Below, piece after piece: positions 7,373 through 53,958 of a DNA stretch of 64,000 nucleotides. Both the position numbers and the translations under genes were made by a program. Source of the DNA: Blastocystis sp. Blastoise (lineage: Eukaryota > Protista > Bigyra: Opalinata); contig JBBPEB010000025.1 in assembly GCA_039096225.1 (NCBI GenBank), positions 558,001-622,000 of the forward strand, written 5' to 3'. How positions within the stretch are numbered: the stretch's first letter is position 1; the number at the start of each line of letters is the position of its first letter. The notes under the pieces are model-generated. The model saw nothing but the letters and a program-made list of their open reading frames with translations, made no database searches and had not been told where the DNA came from.

Positions 7373-23255
<15,883 letters not shown>

Positions 23256-25526: not shown

Positions 25527-26589
25527 TTAAACAACAGTTTTGCTTTCACTCTTAGCATTGGGACAACCAAGAATATACCTATATTAATATTATATATTTC
25601 ATGATATACATAGAAAAAAAAATATATGTAAGTTGAACAATGATAAGATATATATACCAGTAAAGGAAAGCAACTAATAAACTACCTCCAATCATATTAC
25701 CTAAAGTGACAGGAATAAGATTATTCCATAAATATTGACCCCAAGTAACAGTACCATAATGAATGCCAAGAGGAATCATAGTCATATTGGCAACACTATG
25801 TTCAAATCCAAGAGCACAGAAAGAAAATATACCTACCCAAATACATAATGCTTTATTAACAGCATCACTATAGAATCCAGCCATCCAAAGAGCAAGATTG
25901 ACAAGCCAATTACAAGCAATACCTTTCATTAAAGCTCTTCCCCAAGAAAGAGAAGTTTTAGAAACAGCGAGATTCACTACCCAACTCTTATAAGGATCAC
26001 TATCAAATGTACCACTATATAATAATAGTAATAATAATAATAAATATAATAATAATAATAAAGAAATATAAATATATACCAAGGAACAATAATACACCAG
26101 ACAAATAAAGAAGAGCCAACAAAGTTACCTATATAAGAAACAAGAAGATTCTTAAGAACTTGCATCCAAGTAGTTGTTTTTCCTAATAAGCCATAGGTCA
26201 TAGATCCAACGTTACCAGTGAATAATTCAGAACCAGCTATAAAATTATAACAGGAATAATAAAATGGTGAATACTATATTCCATAAATATATAGAGGAAC
26301 ATATATATTCACATACCAATAACAACAATAGTCAGTGCAATAGGGAAAAACAAGCTGAAGAGAATCTTCGAAACAACAACGTTAGAGTGACCAGAGGCAC
26401 AAACAGCAGCAACGGTACCTCCCTAATATTTAAAGTTTATTTCATTGTTGTTGTTTTACATACAACACCAATATAAGCACCAGCAAGAATAGATGAGACA
26501 AAGAGTCTGTCTATTCTGACGTCCGCCTTCTTAGGAGCACCCTTAGCCATGTCTTGGAAGTTTTCAGTAGGTTTTTTAGCACCGCTCAT
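25527..26589 (-). CDS. Formate/nitrite transporter (FNT family), 5 exons
   Basis: SILAGAYIG, FPIAL..GSELFTGN, SYIGNFVGS, KGIACNWLVNLA, GFEHSVANM (conserved His), LIPVTLGNMIGG; ATG 26589, TAA 25527. Confidence 0.93.
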
Positions 26590-26769
26590 GTTGTTCTCTT
26601 TGGATATTAATAAAATAAATATCAAGACATTACACAAAACATTTTCTTTATGGCTCAATTGTTCAACAAATGAATGATGAGGAATCATAACCTTTGAAAA
26701 TCTTGGGAAATCTATTGATTGTAGTCAATATTTTCAAAAAAACAATTTTTCTCGAGATTCTAGGAGTCG

Positions 26770-26940: not shown

Positions 26941-27736
26941 CCCCACATTGACAAAACAACAATAAAAATCTATGATATTGAAAAAAGAATTATTTAAGGG
27001 CTGGATTCATAGCAATTTACATAGTTTACCTATAGAACATGACATAATTGAAAGATATTTACAATACATGAATGCATTGATTAAATAAAGTTGTAATAAA
27101 GGAAAACGAGGGTTAAAAGTCTACAATTAGAGAATGTAAAAGTTACAAAATAATATAATACAATGAGCAGAAAAGCTAATATAATGCTCTGATGTTTTAC
27201 ATATCATTCTGAAAATTAATTGAAGAATAAGAAAAAATGTAATTGTGAAACTAATCAGAATTTTAAAGTGTACACGAATCTAAAATGTACAATATATATC
27301 ATATATCTTAGAATACCGGTTTGTTTAGATAGCGTAATAATTTGAGAATTCTAAAATGTATTTTATAATACTCAACTCGTACCTTTTAGAATATATATTC
27401 ATCTTGATTAAGAATAGAATCTATGATCTTGAATTTTATTCGTTAAATCTTTTCTGATAATTTGATAATATGTAAATAAAAAATATGATTAGGAGTTTAT
27501 AACAATATTCTTCAATAAATGTACACAATATAAAAATATAAGATGATCGTGTGATATTAATAAATAGCAAATAAATAAAGAAAACATTTATTATTAGAAT
27601 CACGATTATTTAGTTTCCAAAAGTGAGAAAAAGAGAAACAAACAAAAACTTCTGAATATAGAAGGTTTCGTCAAAATAAAAAGAATTGCATAATTGCATT
27701 TCCCCTATAAATAAATAGTAAAAGGATAATAGGAAT

Positions 27737-28158
27737 ATGTTTGTATTGAATGAGGAGATGAATAAGGTGAAGAGTAAGACTGGGATGCCAGTAGTTGAAG
27801 GTTCAAGTTCGAAGGTTGTACAAAATTTGTATATAAATTAATATATAAAAAAAATATTATATATTAAAGAATATTATATATTAAAAAGTATTAAAAATTT
27901 AAAAAAAAAGAAAATATTGAATAAGATTATGAAATAAGAAAAAAATAATAATAAAAATATATATAGAACATTATTACAAAAGATGAAAATGATATGTATA
28001 AATATGTCAAAGGTAAATAAATATAAATAAATATAAATAAATATAAATAAATATAATATAAATAATATATATAGGCTCCATTTGTTCATAAGTTTGTAGT
28101 ATTTATAGCATCTGGTTTTGGTTTTTATTTTTTTGGTTCAAAATTATTATTAGAATAA
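27737..28158 (+). CDS. Unannotated 73-aa protein with C-terminal TM helix, copy 1 (exons 27737-27828, 27967-28012, 28075-28158)
   Basis: MFVLNEEMNKVKSKTGMPVVEGSSSKVVQNLTLLQKMKMICINMSKAPFVHKFVVFIASGFGFYFFGSKLLLE*. Two GT-AG introns with matching phases; differences from copy 2 are mostly synonymous. Confidence 0.8.
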
Positions 28159-28440
28159 ATGAAATAAAAATATTAATTAATAGTTTTGTTATTAAATAAT
28201 GATATTCGTTTGTTATTAAATTAAAAAAAACAAAACAAAAAATATTTTTTTTTTAAATATTTTTTTAAAGAATTAAGGATTTATTTATTTATTATTATTA
28301 AAAATAAAAGAATATATATTATATATATATTATAATAATTGATTTATTATAGAATTACCAAAAAAAAAAGAAGAAGAAGAATAAGAATACGATGAATTAT
28401 AATTATTTATATTAAAATATAAAAAAAAATATATATTTTT

Positions 28441-30450
28441 TTAATAAACACGTTTCTTAGGAGGAATAGGAGCAACTTCAGATTCATCAAGAGTATTCAT
28501 ATGAACAGGTCTATACATAAGTGTAGTTTTACCAGTACCAAATAAGGAATCATCATAATAAGCAACAGTATGTTTTAACCAATTCTTATCATCACGTTCA
28601 GAATAATCTTCACGAGCATGAGCACCACGAGATTCTTTACGAGCTTCAGCAGAAATCATAGTAGTATGAGCTTGAGCCATTAAATTTTGTAATTCTAATG
28701 TTTCAACAAGATCAGTATTCCAAACCATAGAACGATCACTAGTCTTAACATCCTTAAGAAGACTAACAACTTCATTCATCTTCTTACAACCTTCTTGTAA
28801 AGTTTCTTCAGTTCTAAATACAGCAGCATAATCTTGCATAGTTCTTTGCATCTTTAATCTAAGTTCAGCAGTAGGAATATGACCATTAGCATAACGAAGT
28901 CTATCAAGATTTTCTAAACAAGATTTACCAGCATCATTAGGAAGAGGTGTTTTAGCTTGACCAGGTTTACTAATTTCTGTAATTCTATTAGCAGCAGCAC
29001 GACCAAATACAACAATATCAAGAAGTGAATTAGCACCTAATCTATTAGCACCATGTACAGATGAACAACCAGCTTCACCAGCAGCAAATAAACCTTTTAC
29101 TACTTTTTCAGTATCTTCTTCACTTGGTTTTAATACTTCAGCAGTATAATTTGTTGGTAAACCACCCATATTATAATGTACAGTAGGTAAAACAGGTACA
29201 GGTTCTTTAGTAACATCAACACCAGCAAAAATACCAGCAGTTTCTGAAATACCAGGAAGACGTTCATGAAGAAGATCAGCAGGAAGATGATCTAAATGAA
29301 GATAAATATGATCTTTAAGAGGACCAACACCACGTCCAGCTCTAATTTCCATTGTCATAGCACGAGATACAACATCACGACAAGCTAAATCTTTAGCAGT
29401 AGGAGCATATCTTTCCATAAAACGTTCACCTTCAGAATTTCTTAATACACCACCTTCACCTCTACAACCTTCAGTCATAAGACAACCAACACCATAAATA
29501 CCAGTAGGATGGAATTGAACAAATTCAGGATCTTCAATAGGAATACCAGCTCTCATAGCCATAGCAGTACCATCACCAGTACATGTATGAGCAGAAGTAG
29601 CAGAGAAATAACAACGACCATAACCACCAGTAGCAATTATTGTATTATTACAATGGAAACGATGAATAGAACCATCTTCTAAACATAAAGCCATAACACC
29701 AACACATTCATCACCATTCATAATTAAATCAAGAGCATGATATTCAATAAAATAAGATGTATTATAAGCAAGAGATCTACCATATAAAGTATGAAGCATA
29801 GCATGTCCAGTACGATCAGCAGCAGCAGCTGTTCTATAAGCTTGACCACCTTCACCAAATTCTTTAGTCTATATATATTATTATTATTATTTATTAAATA
29901 CTTGATTATATAATATTATTATTATTTTATATATATAATACGCTTATTTAATATTTTTATTATATTCTAATTATATTTATTTATTTATTTATTTTATATA
30001 TATATATTATTATTAAAATAATAAAATATATTATTTATTAGAAATTATTTTATTGATTTGTCTCATTATAAATAAAAATAAAAAATTATATATATATATA
30101 TATATATACTTGACCACCAAAAGCTCTTTGATAAATCTTACCATTTTCACATCTAGAGAAAGGAAGACCATAATGTTCTAATTCACGAACAGCACGAGGA
30201 GCTTCACGACACATATAATGAATAGCATCTTGATCACCTAACCAATCAGAACCTTTTACAGTATCATAAAAATGCCATCTCCAATCATCAGCATGCAATA
30301 TATTATTATTATTATTTATTATTATTATATATATACATACCATATTACCTAAAGCAGCATTAACACCACCTTGAGCAGCTACAGTATGAGAACGAGTAGG
30401 GAATAATTTTGAAATAACAGCTGTTTTAAAACCCTATATATTATTATTAA

Positions 30451-30490
<40 letters not shown>

Positions 30491-30887
30491 TTTCAGAAAG
30501 ACCCATAGCAGCACGAAGACCAGCACCACCAGCACCTACAACAACACAATCATATTCGTGATCAACTATATATATATTTATTTATTATTTATTATTTATT
30601 TTAATAAAATTATTTATTCTAATAAAATTATTTATTTTATATAATTAATTAATTATTAATAAAATAAATATTAATATTAAAAATAAAAAAAATAAATAAA
30701 TTAAATTAAATTAAAAAAAAAAATCTTTTTATATAATCTATCTACCTATAGGATAAGCTTGAGATAAATCTTTAGTTATTTTAGCATCAGAAGTAGAACC
30801 AATAACCTTAGAACAAGGAAGAGTAGAAGAATAGGCACGAACAAAAATGCTAGATGCCTTTGAGACTGAACGGAGATTTGCAAGCAT
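28441..30887 (-). CDS. SDHA: Succinate dehydrogenase/fumarate reductase flavoprotein, copy 1 (4 introns: 30566-30745, 30434-30488, 30296-30340, 29869-30109)
   Basis: Presequence-like [21 protein letters not shown]; [13 protein letters not shown]; [10 protein letters not shown] (covalent FAD His); QFHPTG; HYNMGG; [11 protein letters not shown]; C-terminal PPKKRVY. Confidence 0.96.
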
Positions 30888-31810
30888 ACTATACAATTTA
30901 TTTTATATTATTCATTTTCTATATATATACTTTATATAATATTGCAAAATGCTTTCAAGTGACAAAAAGTATAATGATTTGTAAAAGAACCAAACAAACA
31001 AATACACTTCACTTTCAATTTTATGTATAGTCATCTATTATTTATCTTTGATTATCATATATTTTTATCTACTCTTTTTTTGTATTCCTTTTTATTATCC
31101 TTTTTATTCCCATTATTATTTTTCTTTTCTTTTCATTCTCTTTCTCATTTTCCACGATTCTTTATTTTATCTTCCATTTACTCTTTTTTTTTTTTATTAT
31201 TATTTCATTTCTTTTTTTTCGATCATTCTTTTCCCTTTTTCCACAATTATTTTTTATCTAAATTTTTTTCTTTTATTCTTAATTATTTTTTTTTATTAAC
31301 TATCGCAAAATATTTTTTTAACTATTTATAAAATGAACCTTTGCTATTGACGCTAAATATATATTTTAAAATCGATCATTTACTTATATAATCTTATATA
31401 TATATTTTTATTTTAATAATTCGAAATTCATAGCATTTATTATATAAATATCAAACTGAAAGAACCCATTTTCATGAGTATGTTATTTTTCTTTCAAAAA
31501 ATTTAAATGTGTTTATTTGCATATTCGAAACTTTATATTATGATAGATCATATTAGTTCACTATTTTTAAGCACAATCGTATATTAACATATGTTAGCGA
31601 TAATTCAAATATTATATAAACTGGATAAACACAAAATCCAAAAAAATTGACATAATCGTTTAAATATCTATTTTTATCGGCTGTTTACATGAATTCCCAT
31701 ATTTCAAATTTTGTTAAAGTTATTTTTTTTAATGAATTCTAGTCTGTTTCTGTCTATCTTAATTGTATAGTTATACTTTACAAACATTTAAGTAAACAAT
31801 TTAACTAGAT

Positions 31811-34800
31811 ATGAGAATTATTATTTTGCATCTATTCTTCCTATTACTGGTTCATTTCTGTATGTGTTTTTTTTATTAAACTATAATTATCTTCTTAGGC
31901 TATTCAGATTGTTTAAATGGACAAATAGAACTTAAAATAAGAAGAGTTTTTGCGAGTACGCCACTTCAAGAATCATGGAAGATTTATGAAAATTCTGTAG
32001 TAGATCTAAACTTGATATATGAAGGGCAAGGATCAGAATCAGATGGTCAAAATAGTCAACGTACAGAAGCAACATGCGTTTCATTGGATACAACATACAT
32101 TCTTGTTTTAATAGATACGTAAGTGTTTGAATAAAAAAATGTTGAATTTATACGTTACTAGTTTCAAATCAGTTTTATTCTAATAAATCTAATTAAAATG
32201 AAATTATATATATAGAAATGGTGATGGTTGGGGTGGTTTTTCTGGTAATAAAGCTTTGATATCTCTTGAAGTTGATGGTTTTGAAATCCTGTCTACGACT
32301 CTACCATTCGAAACTGGTAATTCTAAAGGAAGACTTACACAAAAATTTATGAGTATAGTTTATAATATATATATTTCGTGATTCACTTTAAAAATCCTAT
32401 GAATAAAGTTCTTTGATACATAATATTTTATATATAGTAACGTTGCCTATATTACCTACTTCTGCAATTAAATATACCAACGGTGCTCAAACAACATCTG
32501 ATTGGACTATTCCTAGTTTTGATGATTCTGGTTGGTTAACAGGTACACCCGGTCAAATACCTGATGTCACTCAAATTACTCGTTATTATAGAACAAGTGC
32601 TACTATTACAGATTTAGATCTTTATTACGTTCTTTATCTTGGTATATATACTTCACAAGGTATTGTTGTCTATGTAAATGGAATCGAAATATTAAGATAT
32701 TATATGACCTCGTATATATATATATATATCATATTCTATATGATTAGCTACTTGTGTATGAAATAAATTATTTTATGAAAAAATATAAATATATAAATTA
32801 TTATACGACTAGTTGTTATATATATTCTCATTATTCTATTACTGTTGAATCTATAGAGATACTATAACAGCTACAACACAGGCATTGACTACTGATGAAG
32901 ACTCAAATTATAGAAAGTATATATATAAATATACATTTTTTATATTAATATTTTGATTTTTTAATATTCACTACATATTATCTTTGTATTACAATTTCTA
33001 TAAATATATTAAGCTTTATTTATTGTATTAATGATTATATATATATAGAATAAGTATTCCTGTTCGTGCTATACGTTCTACTACTTCTCCTAATCAGGTT
33101 GTAATTGCTGTCGAAATTCACGGGAAAGCGTCAGAATCAAATCGATGGGATGATACACATATATTATTATATAAACCACTCTATTCTGGTATACTGATTC
33201 ATTAATTATTTAAATATTAATTTATATATATATATATATTTAATTTGTTTTTTATTATATTTTTTTTTAAATTTCTATGTGCTAAGAAAATAACTTGAAT
33301 ATATATATATATATAGAATCTGATATTTTTAATGTTGGTGGTGATACTCTCTGTTCTCCTACTACTACAAAATGTCAGGAGAGTATAGATACAGTATCCT
33401 CGAATCAAGTTATTAATAATAATCTCGATGGTGATCCTTTTACTCTTACTGTCTCTATGCCACAATTCAGGTATATATACATATATTTATATATCTATGT
33501 TTATATTTATATTTATTTATATTTATATACATATATTTATATACATATATTTATATTTATATACATATATTTATATTTATATGTTTACATTTCTATTAAA
33601 AGCCTCAAATATACAGTACACTTAAATTATATAAATACATTATATATATATAGATTTACCTTTTTGAATCGATATTCTATAATATCCTCCGGTAATCCTG
33701 AATTGATGGATCCTTATGAATGGACTTTATATGGTTCTAACGATGGTACTCACTGGATATTTCTTGATTTTGTTACTGATGTTATATTTAGTCAACGAAA
33801 AACAGTGTATAATTATGATTTGAAATCAAATAAAAAACCATATTCGAAATATAAATGGGTTGTTAGTATGATTATTTAATAACCTTTATTATTTTATACA
33901 TTAAATATTATATAGATATATATATGTATATAATAATCTAAATGATTACTATTTTATAGGTAAAACAAATAATGATTTAGATAGTATATCTTATAGTGGA
34001 ATAAACTTTTATTCTTATGATCAAGAACTTCTTTCTTCTGGTCTTCATTATAGTAAAACATATTTCTCTTATATACAGAGAGATCATATTGAATTATCTC
34101 CAACATCAAATGGATTTATTACTTTTAGTTGTACTGATATTCCCACGGGACTGAGTATTACTAGTACTACCGGTAAGATTGTAGGTAGTCTTATAGACAA
34201 TGGAAACTATACTCTTTCTGTATCTGCTACTGATGCCCTCTCTATGACTGTATTTCAAACTACTCTTACTATTTCTATTAGTGGTATCTATATTATGTAT
34301 TTTTCACTATTATATTATTACTATTTATCTAAATAATTGTTATTTAATGTTTTTTTAAATTTATTTCATTTCTTTTTAAACTATTCTATGTTTTATTATG
34401 TATATATATATTTAAATTTTGTTTACTTTAATTAATGACATAACAATTTCTTCAGTAATATCACTAATTCTAATATATACATATATATAGATTGTTCTCA
34501 GCCTGATATGTCACGTCTTCTTATTTCTCCTGTTGTTGCTAAAGTATCTTCAGTAGTCTTTTCATTATATAATATTGAAAATGATTCTTTGTATTACACA
34601 TTTAATGAAGAAGATTATAATATAGATGGTGATTATTATATGTGTATTCCAGCAGCTCTTTATAAAATGAACATTCAAATTGAAAGAAATCTAGCTATTA
34701 CCGATCATTATTTCTTTACTGTTAATTTATTAAATACAAATAATGTACAATTTCAGTTATTAATAGTGCCTGCATTTGCTACTCGACAATATAATTATAC

Positions 34801-37800
34801 AATTAACACACAAATGAAATTATTTAGTGGAATGACCTGGAAAACATCTTATGATATTCCCGCGATTAATAGTAATACATGGATGCAGAATACATATGAT
34901 ATATCTGACTGGACAGATTATTCTTCTTATACCTCAAGTGTTGTTTCAAATCATATCCAACTCTATAGAAATACATTCACTTTAACATCTATATCAAATA
35001 TACAAGGTATTTCTTGTAGTGTCAATATTCGTTATGGAGCTATTATATATATAAATGAGGAACGTCTTCATACTTATAATTATGCAGATACAGAGCCATT
35101 AACAATTGAAAGTATACCAAGTCGGTCTGAAACCTCTTATTTTTATCATTCTTTTACTGCTCCTATTGATTGCTTAAATGCAAATGGTATAAATACAATA
35201 TCAATTGCTATTATCAGTAGTACTTCAACTCCAGTTGCTCAACAAACATTCGACTGTTTATTTGTTTTATTAGCTTCTTCTTCTGAAATGACTCGAATCT
35301 TTGACGCGTCCAGTGGAGCCAATAGAAATCACCTTGGATATCCTCCTTCAAATCTATTTGATTATGATTTTAATACTTATTGGTCTGCTGAATATATTAC
35401 TGGATCTTCAAAAGCTATTATATATATTTATATAAAGAACCAACGATATGAATATATTAATAAGTATTGCTTAGTAAGTAGTGTTATTCCTGAAAAGAAT
35501 GATCCTTTAGGTTGGAATGTACTTGGATCACAAGGTATATATACAAATCCATTAGAAAATCAATATCAAGAAACATCTACTAAAAATCTTGGCTTTCGAA
35601 ATAGTATCTATTGGGAAGAACGTGGTCAACGACGTTGTTTCTATATTACTAATAATCCTGATCAATATAATCGATATACATTTGAATTTTTAGGAATACG
35701 AAATGAAGATTCAGAAACTAGTATTGCTCTTTCACAAATAGAATTATATTTAGAGGATTTATCTCATATAAATTATCCATCCTTTGCTTTTACTAGAACT
35801 AATATTCAAGCTATAAAATCATTAGTATTTCCTACAATATATTGTACTTCTCCTTATTATCAGAATTTCACAATTACTCCTCGTCTTCCTACTACCTTAT
35901 CTATGGATAGTTCTAATGGTTATATAACAGGTATACCTTTAACTACACAAGAAAGAGTTACATATACTGTATATGCATATAGATTAAATGGATCTATTGC
36001 TTCTACTTATATTTCTATTACTATTAGTGATTGTATATCTCCTAATATATATATTACTATGGCAATATTCTTAGATGGAGAAACATCAGAACAAGGATGG
36101 TCTTTTGAAAATGCATTAACACATGATATTGTTGCAAATCGTAATGGAGGATTAGCAGAAACAGTAGAAACCTTTTATTATTGTATTCCACGTGCGTTAT
36201 ATACAATGACATTACGTCATACATCAACAAGTGGTTGGGGTAATGGATATTTCCGAGTAATTGGCCAATCAAATATGGTTTTATATACAGGAACATTACC
36301 ACGTGGATTAACAACACAATCATTTTCTGTGAATTTACATTATTTATTTATTCCTACATTAGATTCATGGACATTTGCTTTAGATGTACGTAATATTGAT
36401 AGTGATTGGATACAACCAAGTTATAATAAACAAGAAGGATGGCAAAATGGATCTCTTCCAGATCGTATTAACTCACTTACTCAATTCTATAGAACTAAAT
36501 TTGCTGTTGCTATTAATGATCCTCAATTTGCAGGTTTAGAATTTATGGTTATTGCTGTAGCAGGTATGGTAGTATATGTTAATGGTCACATGGTATATCA
36601 CGTGCGAATGCCAGCGGATGAATCATGGACGATTACAACACAAGCAACAAATGCTCTATCATCCGCTGTACAACATTATATAACTGTTAGTATAGAAGAG
36701 AATGAATTAACAGCTACAGGAAATGTTTTTGCTGTAGAAATCCATCAAACAGATGTTGGTGAAGAAGGTAATTGTTTTAATGGTCATATTCGATATGTAT
36801 ATGATTGGGAATATCGTGTAATAAATGGTGTAGCAAGTAGTGATATTCTTGTAGAAGGAGATTATGGTATAGATAAGTTATTTGATAATAATTATATTAC
36901 TAAGACAGTTAGTGGAAGTCGATGTGCACGTGCTCAGTACAAATGGTGGTATAGTGATAATCGAGTAGATTTCGTAACAGGATACAAATTAACTAATGGT
37001 GATAATTGTAATCAGAATCATCCTTCAGGTTGGAGAGTTGAAGCAAGTAATGATAATACACATTGGGATATACTTCATAGAGTACATAATGTAACATGGG
37101 ATAGTTATACACAAACAAAACAATATTCTATTGTTACTAATAAATCATATAAGATGTATCAATTATATATTTTAGAATGTAAAAATGATCCATTACCTGA
37201 TTCACAAATGGAATCATGTGATCCTGGAATACAATTAAGTGAATTTGAATTATTTAGTCATCGAGTAGAAGCTTCTTGTGATCAATTAGATTCTTTTGTT
37301 GCTGTTATTAATAATACTTATAGTTATAGTGATTGTAATCATTGTTATCAAGGATATAGACGTCGATTCTGCTTAAATGGAGTATTTCAAGATATTGAAA
37401 CTTTCTGTACACTCGCTGAACCCTCTATATTAACATATCCACTTACAGATAATGTTATTTATATTAATATGCCTAATGAGATAGGACCTCCTAGTACTGA
37501 TGCTTGTGAAATGACTTATAATATTACAGAAGGTCTACCTACAGGATTCAGCTTAGATTATTCAACAGGAAAGATTAGTGGTACTTCAGAATATCCATTC
37601 CCTCGTACATCTTTCACTGTTTGTGGTACAAATATAAAAGGATCTATTTGTACTACTATTACTATTCAATTAAAAGAAGGTATTTGTGCTGCAGAACCTG
37701 GTTGGCCAAGTATTAAAAATGGAGGTACTTATAGTATTGCTTGTGAAAACCCTCTTTTATATTCAGGTAGTATTGTACGTTCTTGTACGGTTAAGAATGG

Positions 37801-39840
37801 AACTGTTATGTGGACAGAAGCACAAATCGAATGTTATTTACGTACTCCTACAATTAGTTATTCTCCTTCTTCTTATGAATTAACATATAATCAGAGAATC
37901 GAATCAATATATCCTATAGTGAATGGTAATAATATTACTTCCTATACTATACAACCTGATTTACTATCTGGATTAGCTATTGATCCTGATACAGGTGTAA
38001 TCTCCGGTACTCCTAATGTATATGGTTCTACTACTTATACTATTATTCTTAATTGGATTGGAGGAATGGTTACTACTACTCTTTCTCTTATTGTATATTC
38101 AGGATCGACTTGTTTAAGTGAAGACAATTGGTTACAAACTAAAACTGGATATACTTGTCACATTCCATGTGAGAATCCATTATTATACTCTGGAAGTATG
38201 TCACGTTCATGCACAGGTTCAGGAACATGGTCATCTATAGTTAATGGATGTGTATTAGGAAAACCAATAATAAAATATGAACGAGATATTAATGCTTATA
38301 CTGGTTATCAAATTCCAAAATTAAAAGCTTTTATTGTTGCTGAAGATGGATATACTGTTTCTATATCTCCTTATTTTAATCATACATTATATTTCAATCA
38401 AATGACTGGAGATATTTCAGGTACAACTTCTTCTTTAGTAGATCAATCTTATACTCTTTCTGTAAGTAATAGTGCAGGTAGTAGTAATGCAATAGTACAT
38501 ATAAAGTTGATAGAACCACGTTGTCCAAGAGATGGTTTATGGGAATCTGCTAGAAGTGGAGAAAGTAAATATATTAATTGTGATGATCAAGTGAATTATT
38601 CTGGATATAAATCCAGATATTGTCATTTTATTACTCAACCAATATGGAATGATGTTGTAGATAATTGTGTTCTTAATATACCCACTATTCGATTTAGTCA
38701 AACTTCTTATAAGATTTATAAGAATTTAAATATATCTCCAATAACTCCTATTGTTACTGGTTTACAAATAACTCGTTTTTATTTAGATCGTGATATAGTA
38801 ACAAATTTAATAGTAAATGCAACTAGTGGTACTATTACTGGGTCTGCTTCTAAAGATGGTAAATATGAATATAAAATGTTTGTATCCAATCCAACAGGGT
38901 CTAGTTCTGCTACATTTAACCTTGAAATTGTTACTTTAAAATGTGATGTTTCAGGAACATGGGCTGCAACAGATATTAATAGTTATCGATATGCTTCTTG
39001 TCCTGATGGATTATTTGGATCGAAGAAACGATACTGTTTATATGATGGATCATTAGCTACATGGCAAGATGAAAATTTTGATGGTTGTTATAATCAACAA
39101 GAAAAAGGATCTATTGGATTTGGACAATTATTAATTTCTTTCCCTATTATTGTATATAGTTGTTGTTTATTTATTATTTTTTATTAATTAGTTTTATATA
39201 TTTATATAATTATTTTTTTTTATATACTATAATTTATATATATATAATATATATATTTTTTAACTATAACATATAAATATATATATTTTTTAACTATAAC
39301 ATATAATATAACATATAACATATAATATATAATATTCTTTTGTTTTAGGTTGTTGGTTTGAAAGAAGCTCAGATGGCTAGTCCTGCTTCCTTAGAAATAT
39401 ATAGATTGACTCTTTTTGAGTTAGTAAAGAATTATATTGCTTCCAATACAGATCTATATATATCTTCTATTCAAACTCAATTGTCTATTGATAATAATGA
39501 AATAGTTGTATATACATCTATGGTCGTCCCCCGTTCTTATAATAATGAAGTTATTGATATTATTACAAGTAAAGTTACAAGTGGTGAATTATTAAGTATT
39601 TTAATAAGTACTGGAGATACACGTTTAGTGTCTATTGATGACATTCAATTAAATAAGGATGCAATCACTACAAAAGATCTTATGATCTATGTATATATAG
39701 CTATTACTGTAGTTGTCATCATTATTATTGGTATCATTATTGGTATTCTCTTATATAAGCGAGCTACAAGAGTACAAATAGTAAGAAAAGTGAATGTTGT
39801 AAAGTTCTTTGATGGAGATAACAACTATGCTTTCAATTAA
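31811..39840 (+). CDS. Large type-I membrane surface protein, paralog 1 (galactose-binding/F5-8C-like, He_PIG Ig-like and Cys-rich repeats); ~11 exons
   Basis: Signal peptide MRIIILHLFFLLLVHF; W.L.GSNDG.HW discoidin-like motifs; LP.GLS.D..TG.ISGTP Ig repeats; five C..W..T..G..C..R.C..W..C modules; TM IYVYIAITVVVIIIIGIIIGILLY; TAA 39840. Confidence 0.85.
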
Positions 39841-41352
39841 TCTTTTTTCATCTCTATTTTATTGGATACTATTCAATATAGTATTATCATTTATTTATAT
39901 CTTTTTATTTTATCCTCATTTATTTTTGTAGATATTTATATATTATTATGAATACTATGTATCTATCATATTCTATATTTTATATCTATTCTCTTCTTTT
40001 CGTATATGTTTTCAAATCAATTTTTTTTTAAATTTTATTGTATTCTATTTTTATTATATATTCTTCTTTTCTATTCTAAACAAGTATCTACTATTCAAAC
40101 TCAATATATATCTTTTTTTTATTCATATTAATAATTATATTCTATATACTTTTTGTATCTGTATATTTTAATGTTTTTTAAAAACGAAATCTTTTTTATT
40201 TTAATATATTTCTTTTGCCTCTTTGTTACCCATACCTTAAATGTCTTTCTATACTTATTGTTCCTATTTGATTTGTTTTCATTTTTCAGTTTTCTATAAT
40301 ATATATATATATATTGAGGTTCTTTCTTATTTATTACATATCTAATTTCTACTCTTATTTTATAGGCATATTTATATATATATATCGTTTTTTTACGTAT
40401 ATGTTGTTAATAATTCTTTTCATATGCGTTTTTTTCTCTTTTTCTATATAACACTCTAGATCTATTGGTTTGCTAATAGTATTTTTCAATGTTTTTCTAT
40501 TCATATTATTGTTTTGTTCAGTACTATGCTATTTTTTCATGAACAAGCTTTAAAAAATATTTTTATTAAATGTATTCAACTAAGACTTTTATAAAGTAGT
40601 GAATAAAAGTAGGATTCTAAAAAAAGGATTATTATAATAAATAAATTATTAAACTATTCATTTTGACTTGTTTTCCCATTTTTTAAATATGGAATAATAC
40701 TGGTACATTGTCTCTTGGCTATCTCCATTGTTTTATCACATATTTATATTAAAAACAAATGAGAAACTACGAATTTGTTTCTCAAGCTATATAATCTATT
40801 TCTTGGGTTATTGAAGCATGATATATGATCTTATTTAGCAACAGTACATTGATCAACAAGGAGATTAAAAAAGAATGCTCCAAATTGTGTTAAATGAAAC
40901 AGAGAATTCGAAACAATTCTCTGTTCAGTTTAGAGTACCGGATAATACAACGCTATATTCTATATATAAAACCGACAGAATATTTAGAAGACTTATACTA
41001 ACAGCAAATAGAGAGAAAAAAGAGAATATTAGATTTATTTTCGCCACTTTGATGCGTCATCAGTGACAAATGAAATGAATTTCCAGTTTCTCCATAAATT
41101 GAGATTGCTGAAACACATTTTATGACACATATAAATAAAAGAGAGTTATCATGATGATGCAGAAGATCACAATTCATAAACCAATAATAAACAACGAAAA
41201 GAAATCATAGAAGTATGTCTAAGATGTTCGACCACTATTGTCGAAGAATAAGTCAGTAAGGGAAGATCTCGTTAGGGTTTTCTTTTATATTTTTTTGAAT
41301 TCTTTCATTGAATTATAATTCATATTTTTTTTGTTATTAATCAAAGAAATAA

Positions 41353-42573
41353 ATGAAGATTTGTGTATTGTTACTGTTAGTATTAAGTCTTAACATCGCT
41401 TTTGCTGATAAATGGGCTGTTTTAGTTGCTGGTTCCGAAGGCTACTGGAACTACAGACACCAAGCTGATATCGCGCACGCCTATCGTATCCTTATTAACA
41501 ACGGTTATAAACCTGAACACGTTATTGTTTTTGCTAATAATGATGTTCCTACATCTGAAGATAATCCCATTCCTGGTACTCTTTACAATAAGCCTGGTAA
41601 TAATTCAATCAATTACAATGAAGATTATGTCGTTGATTATCAAGGAAAAGATGTTAATACTGCCAATTATATTAAAGTATTGACTGGTGATGAATCTGCT
41701 GGAGGTAAAGTCTTAAAATCTACTGAAGAAGATACTATTTTCCTTGTATATTCTGATCATGGTGGTCCAGAAGTCGTTGGTTTCGTAAATGATAATTTAT
41801 TACGTGAAGATTTAGAAGGAGCCTTTAAGGTTATGAAGGAAAAGAAAATGTTTAAGAAGATTGTTTATTATTTAGAAGCTTGTTATTCAGGTACTATGTT
41901 TAATGACTCACCTACTGATTCCGGTATTTATGCTTTAACTGCTGCTAATACTGATGAATCTTCTTGGGGTTATTATTGTAGTGATGCTGTTGTTAATGGA
42001 GTTGAATTTGATACTTGTCTTGGTGATGAATTCTCTATTCAATGGATGGAAAACGTTGATGAAGGTGATCTTACTCAGACTTTCAAGGAACATGCTGAAT
42101 TAATTACTGCTAAAACATTAAGATCTCATGTATCTCGTTATGGTGATTTATCTTTTGAAAATCTTCCCATTTCTGAAGTTATTACTGGTGATCTTGCTAC
42201 TGTCAAGAATGGTAAGAAGATTGCTCAAGAAAAGATTGAAGGTGTTCGTGGTGATATTTACTTAAATAAACTTAATTATCTTAGACGTAAGATGGAAAAA
42301 TCTAATGATTCTCAAGCTGAAAAGGAATACAATCACGAATTAGAACTTATTCAAAAGATTGATACTTATTTTGGTACTCTTAAAACATCTTTTAAGAATA
42401 TTCAAAAAATATCTTTCTCTCCTTTCAGAGGCCATCTTAAGAACACAAAGTGCTATAGACAAAGTATTGATGAAGTTAACAATAAATTTGAACATAGCGA
42501 TTATTTATTCAAATATTATGAAGTTTTATATCTTGCTTGCAATGAATATTCTGATGCCTATCTCTACTTATAA
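41353..42573 (+). CDS. LGMN: Legumain (asparaginyl endopeptidase, peptidase C13), secreted, intronless
   Basis: Signal peptide; WAVLVAGS..NYRHQAD; catalytic dyad YSDHGG and LEACYSG; CLGDEFS; SHVSRYGD. Confidence 0.95.
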   Translation: MKICVLLLLVLSLNIAFADKWAVLVAGSEGYWNYRHQADIAHAYRILINNGYKPEHVIVFANNDVPTSEDNPIPGTLYNKPGNNSINYNEDYVVDYQGKDVNTANYIKVLTGDESAGGKVLKSTEEDTIFLVYSDHGGPEVVGFVNDNLLREDLEGAFKVMKEKKMFKKIVYYLEACYSGTMFNDSPTDSGIYALTAANTDESSWGYYCSDAVVNGVEFDTCLGDEFSIQWMENVDEGDLTQTFKEHAELITAKTLRSHVSRYGDLSFENLPISEVITGDLATVKNGKKIAQEKIEGVRGDIYLNKLNYLRRKMEKSNDSQAEKEYNHELELIQKIDTYFGTLKTSFKNIQKISFSPFRGHLKNTKCYRQSIDEVNNKFEHSDYLFKYYEVLYLACNEYSDAYLYL

Positions 42574-43632
42574 ATATATAAAGAATTGTCCACTATTTAT
42601 CTAGAAATAATTTTTAAATTATTCTTTAGTAAAAAATTGTTTTGTTTGTAATTAATTAATTTAAACAATTTATAAATATGCACAAAAAACACTTTTAGAT
42701 ATTTTAAATATTTTTAGCACAAATTACATATATAGAAAAGAAATGAAGAATATACAAAGTACTCAAAAAGTGTAATTAGTGAATAAAATGCAGTTTTACT
42801 TATCTAATAAAAAGGGATGATACAAAATTTATAAGGTTATGATACATAGCATAATTTATATCATTATTAGCCGATTTTACAAATAAAGAAACAAGAATCA
42901 TCCACAATACTTAATAGATTCATTAAATTATAATTAATGCTGCAAATAAATGTAAAAATAAAAGACATAGCATTCGAATAAACTTATAAATATATATATA
43001 ACTTCAATAATGAAAACTATAATAAGCATTTCTATAAAATAACGACTATGAAGATGTTCTATATCGAATTATATAATATAAGGTAAAGAATTGTGCCATT
43101 AATTATACTTTCGTCATACGCAAATACAATTAACTAAAATACTTTCAAAAATTATACACTGATATAGATTCAATACATCTTTCATAATGCAGATAAACTA
43201 ATAATTTATTCATCTATCAAAAAAATACAAAAACTACAAAAAAAAAATTAAGAATAAAAAATAAATATTTAGATAAAAAATAATTGTGGAAAAAGGGAAA
43301 AGAATGATCGAAAAAATAATAATAATAAAAAAAAAAGAGTAAATGGAAGAGAAAATAAAGAATCGTGGAAAATAAGAAAGAGAATGAAAAGAAAAGAAAA
43401 ATAATAATGGGAATAAAAAGGATAATAAAAAGGAATACAAAAAAAGAGTAGATAAAAATATATGATAATCAAAGATAAATAATAGATGACTATACATAAA
43501 ATTGAAAGTGAAGTGTATTTGTTTGTTTGGTTCTTTTACAAATCATTATACTTTTTGTCACTTGAAAGCATTTTGCAATATTATATAAAGTATATATATA
43601 GAAAATGAATAATATAAAATAAATTGTATAGT

Positions 43633-45974
43633 ATGCTTGCAAATCTCCGTTCAGTCTCAAAGGCATCTAGCATTTTTGTTCGTGCCTATTCTTCTACTCT
43701 TCCTTGTTCTAAGGTTATTGGTTCTACTTCTGATGCTAAAATAACTAAAGATTTATCTCAAGCTTATCCTATAGGTAGATAGATTATATAAAAAGATTTT
43801 TTTTTTTTTTTAATTTAATTTATTTATTTTTTTTATTTTTAATATTAATATTTATTTTATTAATAATTAATTAATTATATAAAATAAAAAATTTATTAGA
43901 ATAAATAATTTTATTAAAATAAATAATAAAATATAATAAATATATATATAGTTGATCACGAATATGATTGTGTTGTTGTAGGTGCTGGTGGTGCTGGTCT
44001 TCGTGCTGCTATGGGTCTTTCTGAAAATGGTTTTAAAACAGCTGTTATTTCAAAATTATTCCCTACTCGTTCTCATACTGTAGCTGCTCAAGGTGGTGTT
44101 AATGCTGCTTTAGGTAATATGCATGCTGATGATTGGAGATGGCATTTTTATGATACTGTAAAAGGTTCTGATTGGTTAGGTGATCAAGATGCTATTCATT
44201 ATATGTGTCGTGAAGCTCCTCGTGCTGTTCGTGAATTAGAACATTATGGTCTTCCTTTCTCTAGATGTGAAAATGGTAAGATTTATCAAAGAGCTTTTGG
44301 TGGTCAAGTATATATATATATATATATATAATTTTTTATTTTTATTTATAATGAGACAAATCAATAAAATAATTTCTAATAAATAATATATTTTATTATT
44401 TTAATAATAATATATATATATAAAATAAATAAATAAATAAATATAATTAGAATATAATAAAAATATTAAATAAGCGTATTATATATATAAAATAATAATA
44501 TTATATAATCAAGTATTTAATAAATAATAATAATTAATATTTATAGACTAAAGAATTTGGTGAAGGTGGTCAAGCTTATAGAACAGCTGCTGCTGCTGAT
44601 CGTACTGGACATGCTATGCTTCATACTTTATATGGTAGATCTCTTGCTTATAATACATCTTATTTTATTGAATATCATGCTCTTGATTTAATTATGAATG
44701 GTGATGAATGTGTTGGTGTTATGGCTTTATGTTTAGAAGATGGTTCTATTCATCGTTTCCATTGTAATAATACAATAATTGCTACTGGTGGTTATGGTCG
44801 TTGTTATTTCTCTGCTACTTCTGCTCATACATGTACTGGTGATGGTACTGCTATGGCTATGAGAGCTGGTATTCCTATTGAAGATCCTGAATTTGTTCAA
44901 TTCCATCCTACTGGTATTTATGGTGTTGGTTGTCTTATGACTGAAGGTTGTAGAGGTGAAGGTGGTGTATTAAGAAATTCTGAAGGTGAACGTTTTATGG
45001 AAAGATATGCTCCTACTGCTAAAGATTTAGCTTGTCGTGATGTTGTATCTCGTGCTATGACAATGGAAATTAGAGCTGGACGTGGTGTTGGTCCTCTTAA
45101 AGATCATATTTATCTTCATTTAGATCATCTTCCTGCTGATCTTCTTCATGAACGTCTTCCTGGTATTTCAGAAACTGCTGGTATTTTTGCTGGTGTTGAT
45201 GTTACTAAAGAACCTGTACCTGTTTTACCTACTGTACATTATAATATGGGTGGTTTACCAACAAATTATACTGCTGAAGTATTAAAACCAAGTGAAGAAG
45301 ATACTGAAAAAGTAGTAAAAGGTTTATTTGCTGCTGGTGAAGCTGGTTGTTCATCTGTACATGGTGCTAATAGATTAGGTGCTAATTCACTTCTTGATAT
45401 TGTTGTATTTGGTCGTGCTGCTGCTAATAGAATTACAGAAATTAGTAAACCTGGTCAAGCTAAAACACCTCTTCCTAATGATGCTGGTAAATCTTGTTTA
45501 GAAAATCTTGATAGACTTCGTTATGCTAATGGTCATATTCCTACTGCTGAACTTAGATTAAAGATGCAAAGAACTATGCAAGATTATGCTGCTGTATTTA
45601 GAACTGAAGAAACTTTACAAGAAGGTTGTAAGAAGATGAATGAAGTTGTTAGTCTTCTTAAGGATGTTAAGACTAGTGATCGTTCTATGGTTTGGAATAC
45701 TGATCTTGTTGAAACATTAGAATTACAAAATTTAATGGCTCAAGCTCATACTACTATGATTTCTGCTGAAGCTCGTAAAGAATCTCGTGGTGCTCATGCT
45801 CGTGAAGATTATTCTGAACGTGATGATAAGAATTGGTTAAAACATACTGTTGCTTATTATGATGATTCTTTATTTGGTACTGGTAAAACTACACTTATGT
45901 ATAGACCTGTTCATATGAATACTCTTGATGAATCTGAAGTTGCTCCTATTCCTCCTAAGAAACGTGTTTATTAA
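43633..45974 (+). CDS. SDHA: Succinate dehydrogenase/fumarate reductase flavoprotein, copy 2 (only 2 introns: 43775-43951, 44308-44546)
   Basis: Same protein as copy 1 (452-aa ORFs identical). Exon 43952-44307 is continuous across both sites where copy 1 has introns. Confidence 0.97.
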
Positions 45975-46248
45975 AAAAATATATATTTTTTTTTATATTT
46001 TAATATAAATAATTATAATTCATCGTATTCTTATTCTTCTTCTTCTTCTTTTTTTGGTAATTCTATAATAAATCAATTATTATAATATATATATAATATA
46101 TATTCTTTTATTTTTAATAATAATAAATAAATCCTTAATTCTTTAAAAAATATTTAAAAAAAATATTTTTTGTTTTGTTTTTTTAATTTAATAACAAACG
46201 AATATCATTATTTAATAACAAAACTATTAATTAATATTTTTATTTCAT

Positions 46249-46655
46249 TTATTCTAATAATAATTTTGAACCAAAAAAATAAAAACCAAAACCAGATGCT
46301 ATAAATACTACAAACTTATGAACAAATGGAGCCTATATATATTATATATTATTTATATTTATTTATATTATATTTATTTACCTTTGACATATTTATACAT
46401 ATCATTTTCATCTTTTGTAATAATGTTCTATATATATTTTTATTATTATTATTATTATTTCATAATCTTATTCAATATTTTTTTTTTTTTTTAATTTTTA
46501 ATACTTTTTAATATATAATATTCTTTAATATATAATATTTTTTTTATATATTAATTTATATACAAATTCTGCGCAACCTTTGAACTTGAACCTTCAACCA
46601 CTGGCATCCCTGTCTTACTCTTCACCTTATTCATCTCCTCATTCAATACAAACAT
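46249..46655 (-). CDS. Unannotated 73-aa membrane protein, copy 2 (exons 46655-46564, 46427-46382, 46332-46249)
   Basis: Same exon lengths as copy 1 (92/46/84 nt); one amino-acid change (V28A) and otherwise third-position changes. Confidence 0.8.
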
Positions 46656-46964
46656 ATTCCTATTATCCTTTAACTATTTATTTATAGGGGAAATGAATAA
46701 ACACTTCCAATTATTCTTTACTTGAAAAAAATATAATCACGAAAAATTATCGAATTATCACGGAAATTTCATTTGATTTCCATTTTTGTTTTATTCTTTG
46801 TCTTTTATAACCTATTTTAAAATAGATGCCATAAGAATATTAAATTCATTCTGTACTCTACATTTAATGATATTGATATAAATATAAAAAGTAAACAACT
46901 CCAATTATTTATCTTATCTCAAAAAGCTAATGAAGAACGGTGATAAATTAAACTAGTATCATTC

Positions 46965-47749: not shown

Positions 47750-50700
47750 ATGAGAAACGTTTGGTTTATTCTCTTCTCTGTTGGTTTCTTCTATTTTGGT
47801 ATATAAATATTCATATTACTAAATAAATAATCCTTTTTTTCATTTAATAATTTGGTTCATTAACTTATTTGAATATATTTATTTAGCAAGTGCCCAATGT
47901 GCAACGCCTACTGTTGGCTTCACAGCTACTAGAAATTTAAAGATGTATCCTGCTGAAGAACGTTGGTCAATTTATCAAGGTACCGATGTTTCTGATTCAG
48001 GCGTCTTAATCTTTACTAATCCTATTGTCAGTGATAATGACAGAGGTATTAAGACTTATGAAGTATGTCTTCAAACTGGTGCTCAATACACTTTAGCTCT
48101 TTGGGATGGTTATGGTGATGGTTGGAGTAGTGGCTCTACGATCAGTATTAGTATTGGTAATCATGTATTCTTTACTGAAACCTTAAAGAATGGTGAGGCT
48201 CTTAAAGATGTAAAAAAAAACATTCCTTTTACATGTATATAAAAAATTTTTTTTTAATTTAGATTTATTATTATTTAATATTATATAGTATCATTAACTG
48301 TTTCTCCTGGATCTACTTGGAAAACTACTATTGCTCCTCAAGTTGGTAATACTTGGACTCAAGCTTCTTTTGCTGATACAACTTGGATTCCTCTTGCTCC
48401 TGGTTCTTTTCCTACTATTTCTACTACTACTCGTTATTATAGATTTACAACTACTCTTACTCAAACTGGATTCCATGCTATAGGATTATCCTTAAAAATG
48501 AATTCTGGTTATATTATTTATGTTAATGGTCAAGAAGCTTCTCGTGCAGGATTACCTATGTATTTATATTTATAAAAATTTGTTTATAAAAATTTATTTA
48601 TATTTACTATTTACTTTCGATTTAGATCGATAAATATATATTTTATTTGTTATTTCTAGTGGTTCAGTTGATTCAAATACAGCTTCTCTAAGTGCTGAAA
48701 ACACAGCTACATTCAAAAAGTATATATAAATATTTTATTATCATCTTTATTATTATTATTACTTTTATATTTCTATAGTTTGGCTATTCCTGCTTCTATA
48801 TATATGACTTCTGGTAATTCTATTACTTTTGCTATTGAGGTTCACTCTCATTCAACCCAACTTAATACTGCTGATCCATTTGTTTTCTTTTCAGAAATAG
48901 TTAATGATAGTATATAACTATTCTACTTTATATATATATATATATATATATATAGATGGTCTCATTGTTGGTGGAAATGGTGATACTACATGTTTATATG
49001 ACAGTAATGCTAATACTGAAACTTGTGATAAAGGATTTGATGGTAATTTAGAAACTAAATTTTCATTTACAGGAACTGAGAATACAATCACATATTCTTT
49101 CCCTGGTGGTATGCAAACTTGGTTTAATGGTTATCGTATTGTTTCTGCTGGTTATTTTCCAGAAAGAGATATGAAAGCATGGAAATTATATGGTTCAAAC
49201 GATAATGGTGTTACTTGGCTATTTCTTGATAGTATTACTGGTAATTCTTTCCCTGAAAGAACTACTTCTTATAATTTCTACTTACCTTCTAATAGAAAGG
49301 CATTTAGTCAAATTAAATTAGTGACTACAGAAAATAATGGTAATACATATACTGAATTCTATGAGTTTAGTTTAATGGCCTATTCTAAACCTCTTCTTAA
49401 TGCTGGTCTTCAATATTCTTCACCTACTTTAATAGGTAAAACAAGTATAGATGTATCTCTTGCTCCTATCTCTACAGGTATTCATACATATACTGTCTCT
49501 CCTCCTTTCCCTACTGGTATCTATTTAAATCCTGAAAATGGTCTTATTTATGGTTCTACCGATCTTCCTCAAAATAATGTTGCTTATACTATTAGTGCTA
49601 TTGATGGTGCTACTAATGCTTCTACTTCTACCGTTGTTACTTTTAATATTGTTGAATGTGCTCAACCTGCAATGGCTTTTATATCTCTTTATAAATATGA
49701 AATGGGAAATGCTAAAGATGAAAGAATTGTTATTTATTCTGAAACTAATACTGAAATAACCACTATTCAAGGAGTTAACTTTGGTGCTGCTCAAACGAAA
49801 ATTCTCTGTGAACCTGCTGGTCGTTGGAAATTTGTTCTTTTTGATGATAATAATGATGGTTGGGATACTGGTTCTCGTTTTGATGTTTCTATTAAATATA
49901 ATTCAAATACTCTTCTTCGAATTGCTCGTTTATATTTATTAGAAGGTACTACTGCTACTTATTATATTAATACTCGTCTTGATGTTGGTCCTAGATCTGG
50001 TTGGAAATATCAACTAGGTGCTCCTACTGATGTTAATTGGAAAACTGCTCTTTTCTCTGATGCTGCTTGGCAAACATTAACTTATATTCCTTCTATTTCT
50101 GTTACTCAAAATATCGTTCTTCTTAGAAGAACATTCACTATTATGTCGAAGACTAATATGGTTGGTTGGGAAATTGACTTTAAATCTAAAGCTGGTTGTG
50201 TTATTTATGTTAATGGTAATGAAGTATATAGATACTATATTAGCGCTGGTGAAGTAAACTCTGCTACTGTTGCTACTGGTGGTGAAAACTCTTTCTTATG
50301 GAGATCTGTATCGGGTCCTATGACTACTCTTTCTAATGGTAATAGTGTTACTATAGCTATTGCTCTTGTTAATCTTGGTACTACTTCTTATAATCTTGAA
50401 TTTGATGGTTTGTTCCGTCTTCTTGGAGATGCGAATGTCATTCAAAATGCAGCTGATGGTAATTATGATTCTAGTGGTGTTTTCTCTGATGGTAATCCTG
50501 AATATCTTTTTGATTCAGTTCCTAAAAGTCGTTGGATATCTGATGAACATGATTCTGTAACTGAAAAATGGGTTACTGTAGAATTTAATAACAAAAGAGC
50601 TATCTACATGAATAAATATTGTCTTATTTCAAATAGAGATTCTCCTCAACATGATCCTGCTGATTGGACTATTTATGGTTCTATGGATGGTACTACTTGG

Positions 50701-53700: not shown

Positions 53701-53958
53701 AATAATTTAAAGTCTGTTACTGCTACATCTCTTTCTGGTGAAATTACTACTAAGGGAAATTCTCTTTCTACTGGCATTATTATTCTTATTGTTGTTTTAG
53801 TTATTTTGGTTGTTGCTATAGTTGCTGTTGTCGTATTTTGCGTTGTTAATCGTAGTAAAGGGAAGAAGGGTAAGAATGGTAAGAAATTAGGTTCAAGTAA
53901 AAAGTCTTCAGATAAAACAAAAGGAGCTTCTACTTCAACTGCTAAACCTAAGATTTAA
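47750..53958 (+). CDS. Large type-I membrane surface protein, paralog 2; 5 introns all in the 5' 1.2 kb, then a 5 kb exon
   Basis: Signal peptide MRNVWFILFSVGFFYF; same domain series as paralog 1 with three Cys-rich modules; TM GIIILIVVLVILVVAIVAVVVFCVV; Lys-rich tail; TAA 53958. Confidence 0.9.

Follow-up and report, generated by a model that had tools for sequence, protein, structure and literature searches.

As assembled, the two SDHA genes of Blastocystis sp. Blastoise (33.34 Mb, 34 contigs) encode identical proteins and differ by two adjacent short introns, kept in copy 1 and missing from copy 2, which comparison with relatives marks as ancestral. We consider an assembly artefact slightly more likely than an event in a living cell. 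The reading towards which we lean is that spliced RNA reads entered short-read polishing and removed the introns from copy 2, while altering one splice acceptor in copy 1.

Two SDHA copies in inverted arms

The window (the whole 64,000-nt stretch of DNA analysed here) carries an inverted repeat with one SDHA gene in each arm. A search of the genome found these two SDHA copies and no others. The top protein match, at 100%, comes from Blastocystis sp. Blastoise, and the genome matches that of strain Rus-B, from a Russian tortoise, described in the genome paper (PMC12129017). Arm limits were obtained from blastn and pairwise alignment, and the features are as follows.

27697..31295 (approx.), minus strand: inverted-repeat arm 1, with SDHA copy 1
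28441..30887, minus strand: SDHA copy 1, five exons, 641 aa when spliced, apparently NCBI WA158_004582
30746-30887, 30489-30565, 30341-30433, 30110-30295, 28441-29868, minus strand: exons of copy 1
30566..30745, minus strand: intron 1 of copy 1, 180 nt, phase 1, GT-AG, ancestral position
30434..30488, minus strand: intron 2 of copy 1, 55 nt, phase 0, GT-AG, ancestral, missing from copy 2
30296..30340, minus strand: intron 3 of copy 1, 45 nt, phase 0, GT...TG, ancestral, missing from copy 2
30296..30297, minus strand: non-canonical TG acceptor of copy 1 intron 3
29869..30109, minus strand: intron 4 of copy 1, 241 nt, phase 0
28546 (minus strand), partner 45869 (plus strand): sole CDS difference between the copies, synonymous
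43235..46695 (approx.), plus strand: inverted-repeat arm 2, with SDHA copy 2
43633..45974, plus strand: SDHA copy 2, three exons, identical 641 aa, apparently NCBI WA158_004585
43633-43774, 43952-44307, 44547-45974, plus strand: exons of copy 2
43775..43951, plus strand: intron 1 of copy 2, 177 nt
43952..44307, plus strand: fused exon of copy 2, 356 nt, with base-precise junctions at 44028/44029 and 44121/44122
44308..44546, plus strand: intron 4 of copy 2, 239 nt

The initial annotation had placed the two copy 1 introns and the two precise copy 2 junctions at exactly these positions. It had also noticed a single synonymous difference in the CDS, which we confirm over the full 1,926 nt of the spliced CDS in either copy, and had described introns 1 and 4 as retained in both copies, as they are (180/177 and 241/239 nt). 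The identity of the gene is clear from full-length matches to PF00890 (FAD_binding_2) and PF02910 (Succ_DH_flav_C) in an open frame and from a match to the solved mitochondrial SDHA chain 9qdl_A (E 1.8e-276). The last exon alone shows 87-88% identity to SDHA of human-subtype Blastocystis.

The SDHA duplication itself is genuine. Each arm is about 3.5 kb long with unrelated flanks on both sides, and divergence between the arms is graded, with SNP densities rising from 0.05% in the CDS through 0.4-1.5% in introns and promoter to 2.6% at the outer end. Because CDS and outer end differ so strongly, the duplication probably predates what the identity of the CDS would imply, with the centre homogenised later. 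Homogenisation specific to the exons was not significant, with one synonymous SNP at ~438 sites against ~4 expected.

Copy 2 lacks introns that its relatives keep

Introns 1-3 are found at the same codon and phase, with GT-AG ends, in every other Blastocystis lineage fetched. The outgroups comprised ST1 NandII (three copies), ST7, two further gut-metagenome Blastocystis contig groups and a GC-rich relative; a JGI scan added one Blastocystis locus (L045), and its other 79 loci were left out. Protein identity to the Blastocystis lineages keeping introns 1-3 is 87-92%. Because the outgroups hold introns 2 and 3 at the same site and phase, the comparison with related isolates proposed in the initial annotation polarises the difference as a loss from copy 2, not a gain in copy 1.

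Introns 1-3 are thus kept throughout the sampled radiation, and intron 4 alone varies: its position is common to loci L003 and L004, the GC-rich relative also has it, and it is absent from the other Blastocystis loci fetched. Against this background, two losses within ~1-3% neutral divergence are far above the long-term rate for SDHA introns.

A splice acceptor that matches the mRNA

Intron 3 of copy 1 ends in TG, a feature on which the initial annotation had not remarked. The two bases equal the last two of the upstream exon, that is, the bases of the spliced mRNA, and the TG is derived, with AG at this acceptor in all relatives fetched. In a rough scan of the window it was the one clear non-canonical splice edge against ~65 canonical ones, so that non-canonical edges equal the mRNA base in 1/1 cases, a single case for which the chance of a match is 1/3 to 1/2.

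If retained, intron 3 adds 15 stop-free codons in frame. The NCBI models are 676 and 691 aa long; the 691-aa model, WA158_004582, reads through intron 3, gaining 15 extra residues, and also carries an extra N-terminus. Exact look-ups of the ORFs of the fused exon and of the read-through gave no match, a result of little weight because the records of this genome may be absent from the collection searched.

Spliced reads in polishing as the favoured source

The route that we infer would start with spliced RNA-seq reads of at least 125 nt entering a polishing step that is not splice-aware (bwa mem with FreeBayes, as in POLCA). Such reads would bridge introns of up to ~60-100 nt as deletions but never those of 180-241 nt. 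Between near-identical duplicates, all bridging reads would map to the copy with the slightly shorter intron, giving a precise loss there, and reads overhanging the junction by two bases would tie between the copies, so that the AG of the other copy could be overwritten by the TG of the mRNA. The favoured copy would receive all of the bridging reads but half of the clipped ones, and the regime in which this operates would have to be narrow. This account of how spliced reads act on introns in polishing is our own, built on general knowledge; a literature search returned no paper describing exactly such an artefact and no follow-up on the assembly.

The behaviour of reads under bwa-mem-type scoring agrees with this route. 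A spliced read of at least 125-150 nt aligns across a 45-55-nt intron with a deletion, which it never does across one of 180-241 nt, and at the intron 3 acceptor two bases are the sole ungapped overhang accepted end-to-end, which votes exactly for AG to TG. We ran a toy simulation, which is our own approximation of mapping and variant calling rather than bwa or FreeBayes, with introns in both copies and those of copy 2 assumed to be shorter by 2 nt, in line with the 3 and 2 nt by which its introns 1 and 4 fall short of those in copy 1. All bridging reads went to copy 2, deleting both introns there, and the T vote reached copy 1; when copy 2 was truly without introns, zero reads voted T.

Several observations favour spliced reads as the source. 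The missing introns are just the two within reach of the aligner, and the single odd edge of copy 1 is the one substitution that the overhang rule predicts there, so that one process gives both oddities, whereas a biological reading requires a second rare event. Introns 1-3 are also stable in all Blastocystis lineages fetched, and a recent double loss exceeds their long-term rate. Among the sequencing runs searched, the best contains 0.79 of the query words, compared with 0.80 expected from exons alone, as for spliced RNA. POLCA applies a variant once more than one read carries it, provided that such reads are at least double the reference reads in number (PMC7347232). In the genome paper, the POLCA round is termed 'short-read' only, and Rus-B was sequenced apart, on MiSeq v3 (PMC12129017).

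Other observations weigh against spliced reads. The genome paper gives Illumina DNA as the input for Polypolish and nowhere states that RNA was used in polishing (PMC12129017). Short introns to which reads map uniquely are still present: the window's formate/nitrite transporter gene, whose codon bias exceeds that of SDHA, keeps GT-AG introns of 41, 65, 79 and 80 nt, and Rab genes keep introns of ~32-62 nt (lengths estimated from coordinates). A blanket loss of short introns from expressed single-copy genes was therefore not found in these genes, and the version of the artefact that remains is the one favouring duplicates. Because unique short introns survive, it could work only within a narrow range of read lengths and allele-fraction filters, and in the simulation reads of 75 nt could not produce the deletion. 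Most of the remaining SDHA edges would be just as exposed to such overwriting but are canonical, the NandII assembly from the same study is undamaged in its three SDHA copies and in 7/8 neighbouring genes, and the TG may match the mRNA by chance, as given above.

Introns of ≤55 nt number 0/54 in chaperonin and proteasome genes and 0/17 in weakly expressed MCM genes, compared with ~27% in a rough scan of the window, and this test of expression on intron length failed to discriminate. Among duplicated genes, the two copies of RPL13A have an identical intron set. In the TLDc family, a 38-41-nt intron is present in two paralogues and precisely missing from at least 15 others (75-90% identity).

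Possible loss through a reverse-transcribed mRNA

The strongest alternative, which we regard as a serious contender though less probable than spliced reads in polishing, is a genuine and recent loss from copy 2 by recombination with reverse-transcribed SDHA mRNA, over a tract from exon 2 to exon 4. The initial annotation had proposed an RNA-templated conversion of this kind. The difference is a precise loss in copy 2 and the genome has a source of reverse transcriptase, so that such a conversion may have occurred, but the artefact that it had named as an alternative gains weight because of the TG acceptor, the absence of only those introns that reads can bridge and the long-term stability of these introns. 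Under cDNA-mediated loss, the TG of copy 1 would have arisen by a mutation of its own, or would mark where a conversion tract from copy 2 ended, and would be tolerated, with the retained intron in frame and copy 2 making the normal protein.

The genome holds a plausible source of the enzyme. The search for reverse transcriptases suggested in the initial annotation yielded 20 RVT_1 matches above the Pfam cut-off, 13 of them in open frames of >2,400 aa. They belong to two young retrotransposon families whose copies are 98-100% identical, and the intactness and near-identity of these copies point to reverse-transcriptase activity. In the one retrotransposon that we read, a C-terminal Cys-His motif occurs together with a nuclease motif of the PD type, which are typical of restriction-like-endonuclease non-LTR elements.

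Precise, concerted loss of neighbouring introns is the signature of the reverse-transcriptase model (PMC4683709, PMC3652778, PMC3629103), and the precise junctions, adjacency and loss polarity seen here fit it. The persistence of short introns in single-copy genes elsewhere likewise favours a real loss, as does the TLDc pattern, which shows that such exact differences arise in older families as well. A retained 45-nt intron that is a multiple of three and stop-free would also be expected if selection had filtered a real mutation. However, such a loss would have to outpace by far the long-term rate seen for these introns, and it calls for a further, independent change at an invariant splice base; nor does it predict that both long flanking introns are retained. 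The statistics of position, drawn from one gene, are weak: losing two of four introns gives an adjacent pair 1 in 2 times and the two shortest introns 1 in 6 times by chance, and with regard to 3' bias the 3'-most intron, intron 4, is kept.

A broader version, which we think improbable as a whole, would have young non-LTR retrotransposons driving a genome-wide burst of RNA-templated gene conversion. Duplicates would then be shedding short introns tens to hundreds of times faster than the long-term rate, and splice sites would acquire mRNA bases from incomplete tracts.

Remaining explanations

All readings other than spliced reads in polishing and cDNA-mediated loss are, taken together, quite unlikely. 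Genuine deletions by end-joining repair, with no RNA template, are very unlikely: the junction repeats of 1 nt at intron 2 and 2 nt at intron 3, as assembled, offer some purchase for such repair, but two separate base-precise deletions with almost no microhomology would be needed. Still less credible is a mis-assembly in which a single locus, or a pair of haplotypes, appears as two arms; the strain does have a diploid k-mer signal (PMC12129017), but the unrelated flanks on both sides of each 3.5-kb arm and the graded divergence speak against this, and Nanopore reads normally span a repeat of such length. Two recent gains of TA-rich introns in copy 1, the other possibility raised in the initial annotation, can be dismissed, as ST1 (in three copies), ST7 and every other Blastocystis locus fetched have introns at both sites and in the same phases, and TA-rich intron sequence, the one point in favour, is general in this genome anyway.

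Implications

If spliced reads in polishing are the source, a published reference genome bears their imprints. Neither its intron counts nor its seemingly non-canonical splice sites can then be relied on, and the same holds for some of its gene models, among them WA158_004582 with its 15-residue insertion. If the loss is real, it is a clean, polarised and very recent example of a mechanism already described, and the state before the loss is preserved 12 kb away. Even then the mechanism is well known and this is a new instance only, whose importance depends on the pattern being genome-wide. Were the retrotransposon-driven burst true, it would offer a culturable system for directly watching spliceosomal intron loss.

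Comparison with known systems

The present gene is an ordinary member of mitochondrial SDHA, the flavoprotein of complex II, and SDHA is likewise multi-copy in ST1 Blastocystis (three copies).

A polishing artefact under the bwa mem and FreeBayes rule of POLCA (PMC7347232) predicts that short introns alone are deleted, that duplicates are affected asymmetrically in one copy and that edges turn to mRNA bases. The first two are matched here, and one splice edge carries the mRNA bases. Unlike that expectation, many short single-copy introns persist, and polishing with RNA is not mentioned in the genome paper.

Read-through of an intron as coding sequence, or de-intronization (PMC3629103), resembles copy 1 intron 3 in its broken acceptor, its length of 3n and its lack of stops, and the NCBI model of copy 1 likewise keeps the intron; the resemblance is known here from sequence and gene model. 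In that study, the sole testable case with a changed splice signal was disproved by RNA data, and its authors caution that such calls hinge on annotation quality (PMC3629103).

The known cases of the reverse-transcriptase model, in Dictyostelium (PMC4683709), fission yeasts (PMC3629103) and rodents (PMC3652778), show the same precise removal of adjacent introns, and share with the SDHA pair the ancestral presence of the introns and a retrotransposon reverse transcriptase in the genome. They differ in that the comparison here is between two near-identical copies in one assembly, and known from that assembly, rather than between species, in that the 3'-most intron is retained and in that a splice edge copying the mRNA lies alongside.

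Inverted arms and the spacer between them

The two inverted arms, each carrying one SDHA copy, diverge by 2.6% at their outer end (27697-28159 against the outer end of arm 2), compared with 0.05% in the SDHA coding sequence. Between them lies a 12-kb spacer (31296-43234 of the window), which the inverted orientation of the arms could allow to flip. Within the spacer are:

about 31.8-39.8 kb: large, multi-exon surface-protein-like gene
41353-42573: intronless legumain gene (Peptidase_C13)

Outside the spacer, the stretch at 47750-53958 looks like a paralogue of its surface-protein-like gene.

Introns of other genes in the window

Two further genes of the window are:

25579-26590, minus strand: formate/nitrite transporter gene with four canonical introns (41, 80, 65 and 79 nt)
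58338-61076: intronless gene for an acetate-CoA ligase (ADP-forming)-type protein of 912 aa with a C-terminal GNAT domain

The transporter gene is one of two in the Blastocystis sp. Blastoise assembly (G000), and the ligase-type gene shows strong codon bias. At 22374-22616 on the minus strand, an intron whose start resembles ATATCC also carries a motif like a branch point; it is possibly of the minor (AT-AC) type.

Retrotransposons

The G000 assembly harbours two young families of non-LTR retrotransposons with frames of 2,400-2,800 aa (loci L015-L020), located on contigs C4, C10, C13, C14, C15, C23, C29 and C33. Copies of the second family follow one another in tandem, about 8.6 kb per repeat.

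Intron presence and absence in duplicated genes

Two TLDc paralogues (loci L034 and L036) share an intron site, occupied by a 38-nt GC-AG intron in one and a 41-nt GT-AG intron in the other; the intron is precisely missing from at least 15 other TLDc paralogues. RPL13A is present in G000 as near-identical inverted duplicates 21 kb apart (contig C15, about 1,162,000 and 1,184,000; loci L042-L044). Both duplicates retain a 140-nt intron, and both lack a second intron that is present in ST1. About 20 papain-family protease genes in G000 are intronless and frequently form tandem or inverted pairs.

SDHA is itself multicopy in the outgroup strain ST1 NandII, where three copies (loci L006-L008) encode identical proteins. 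Their neighbourhoods differ, and every copy contains three introns, all 32-35 nt long.
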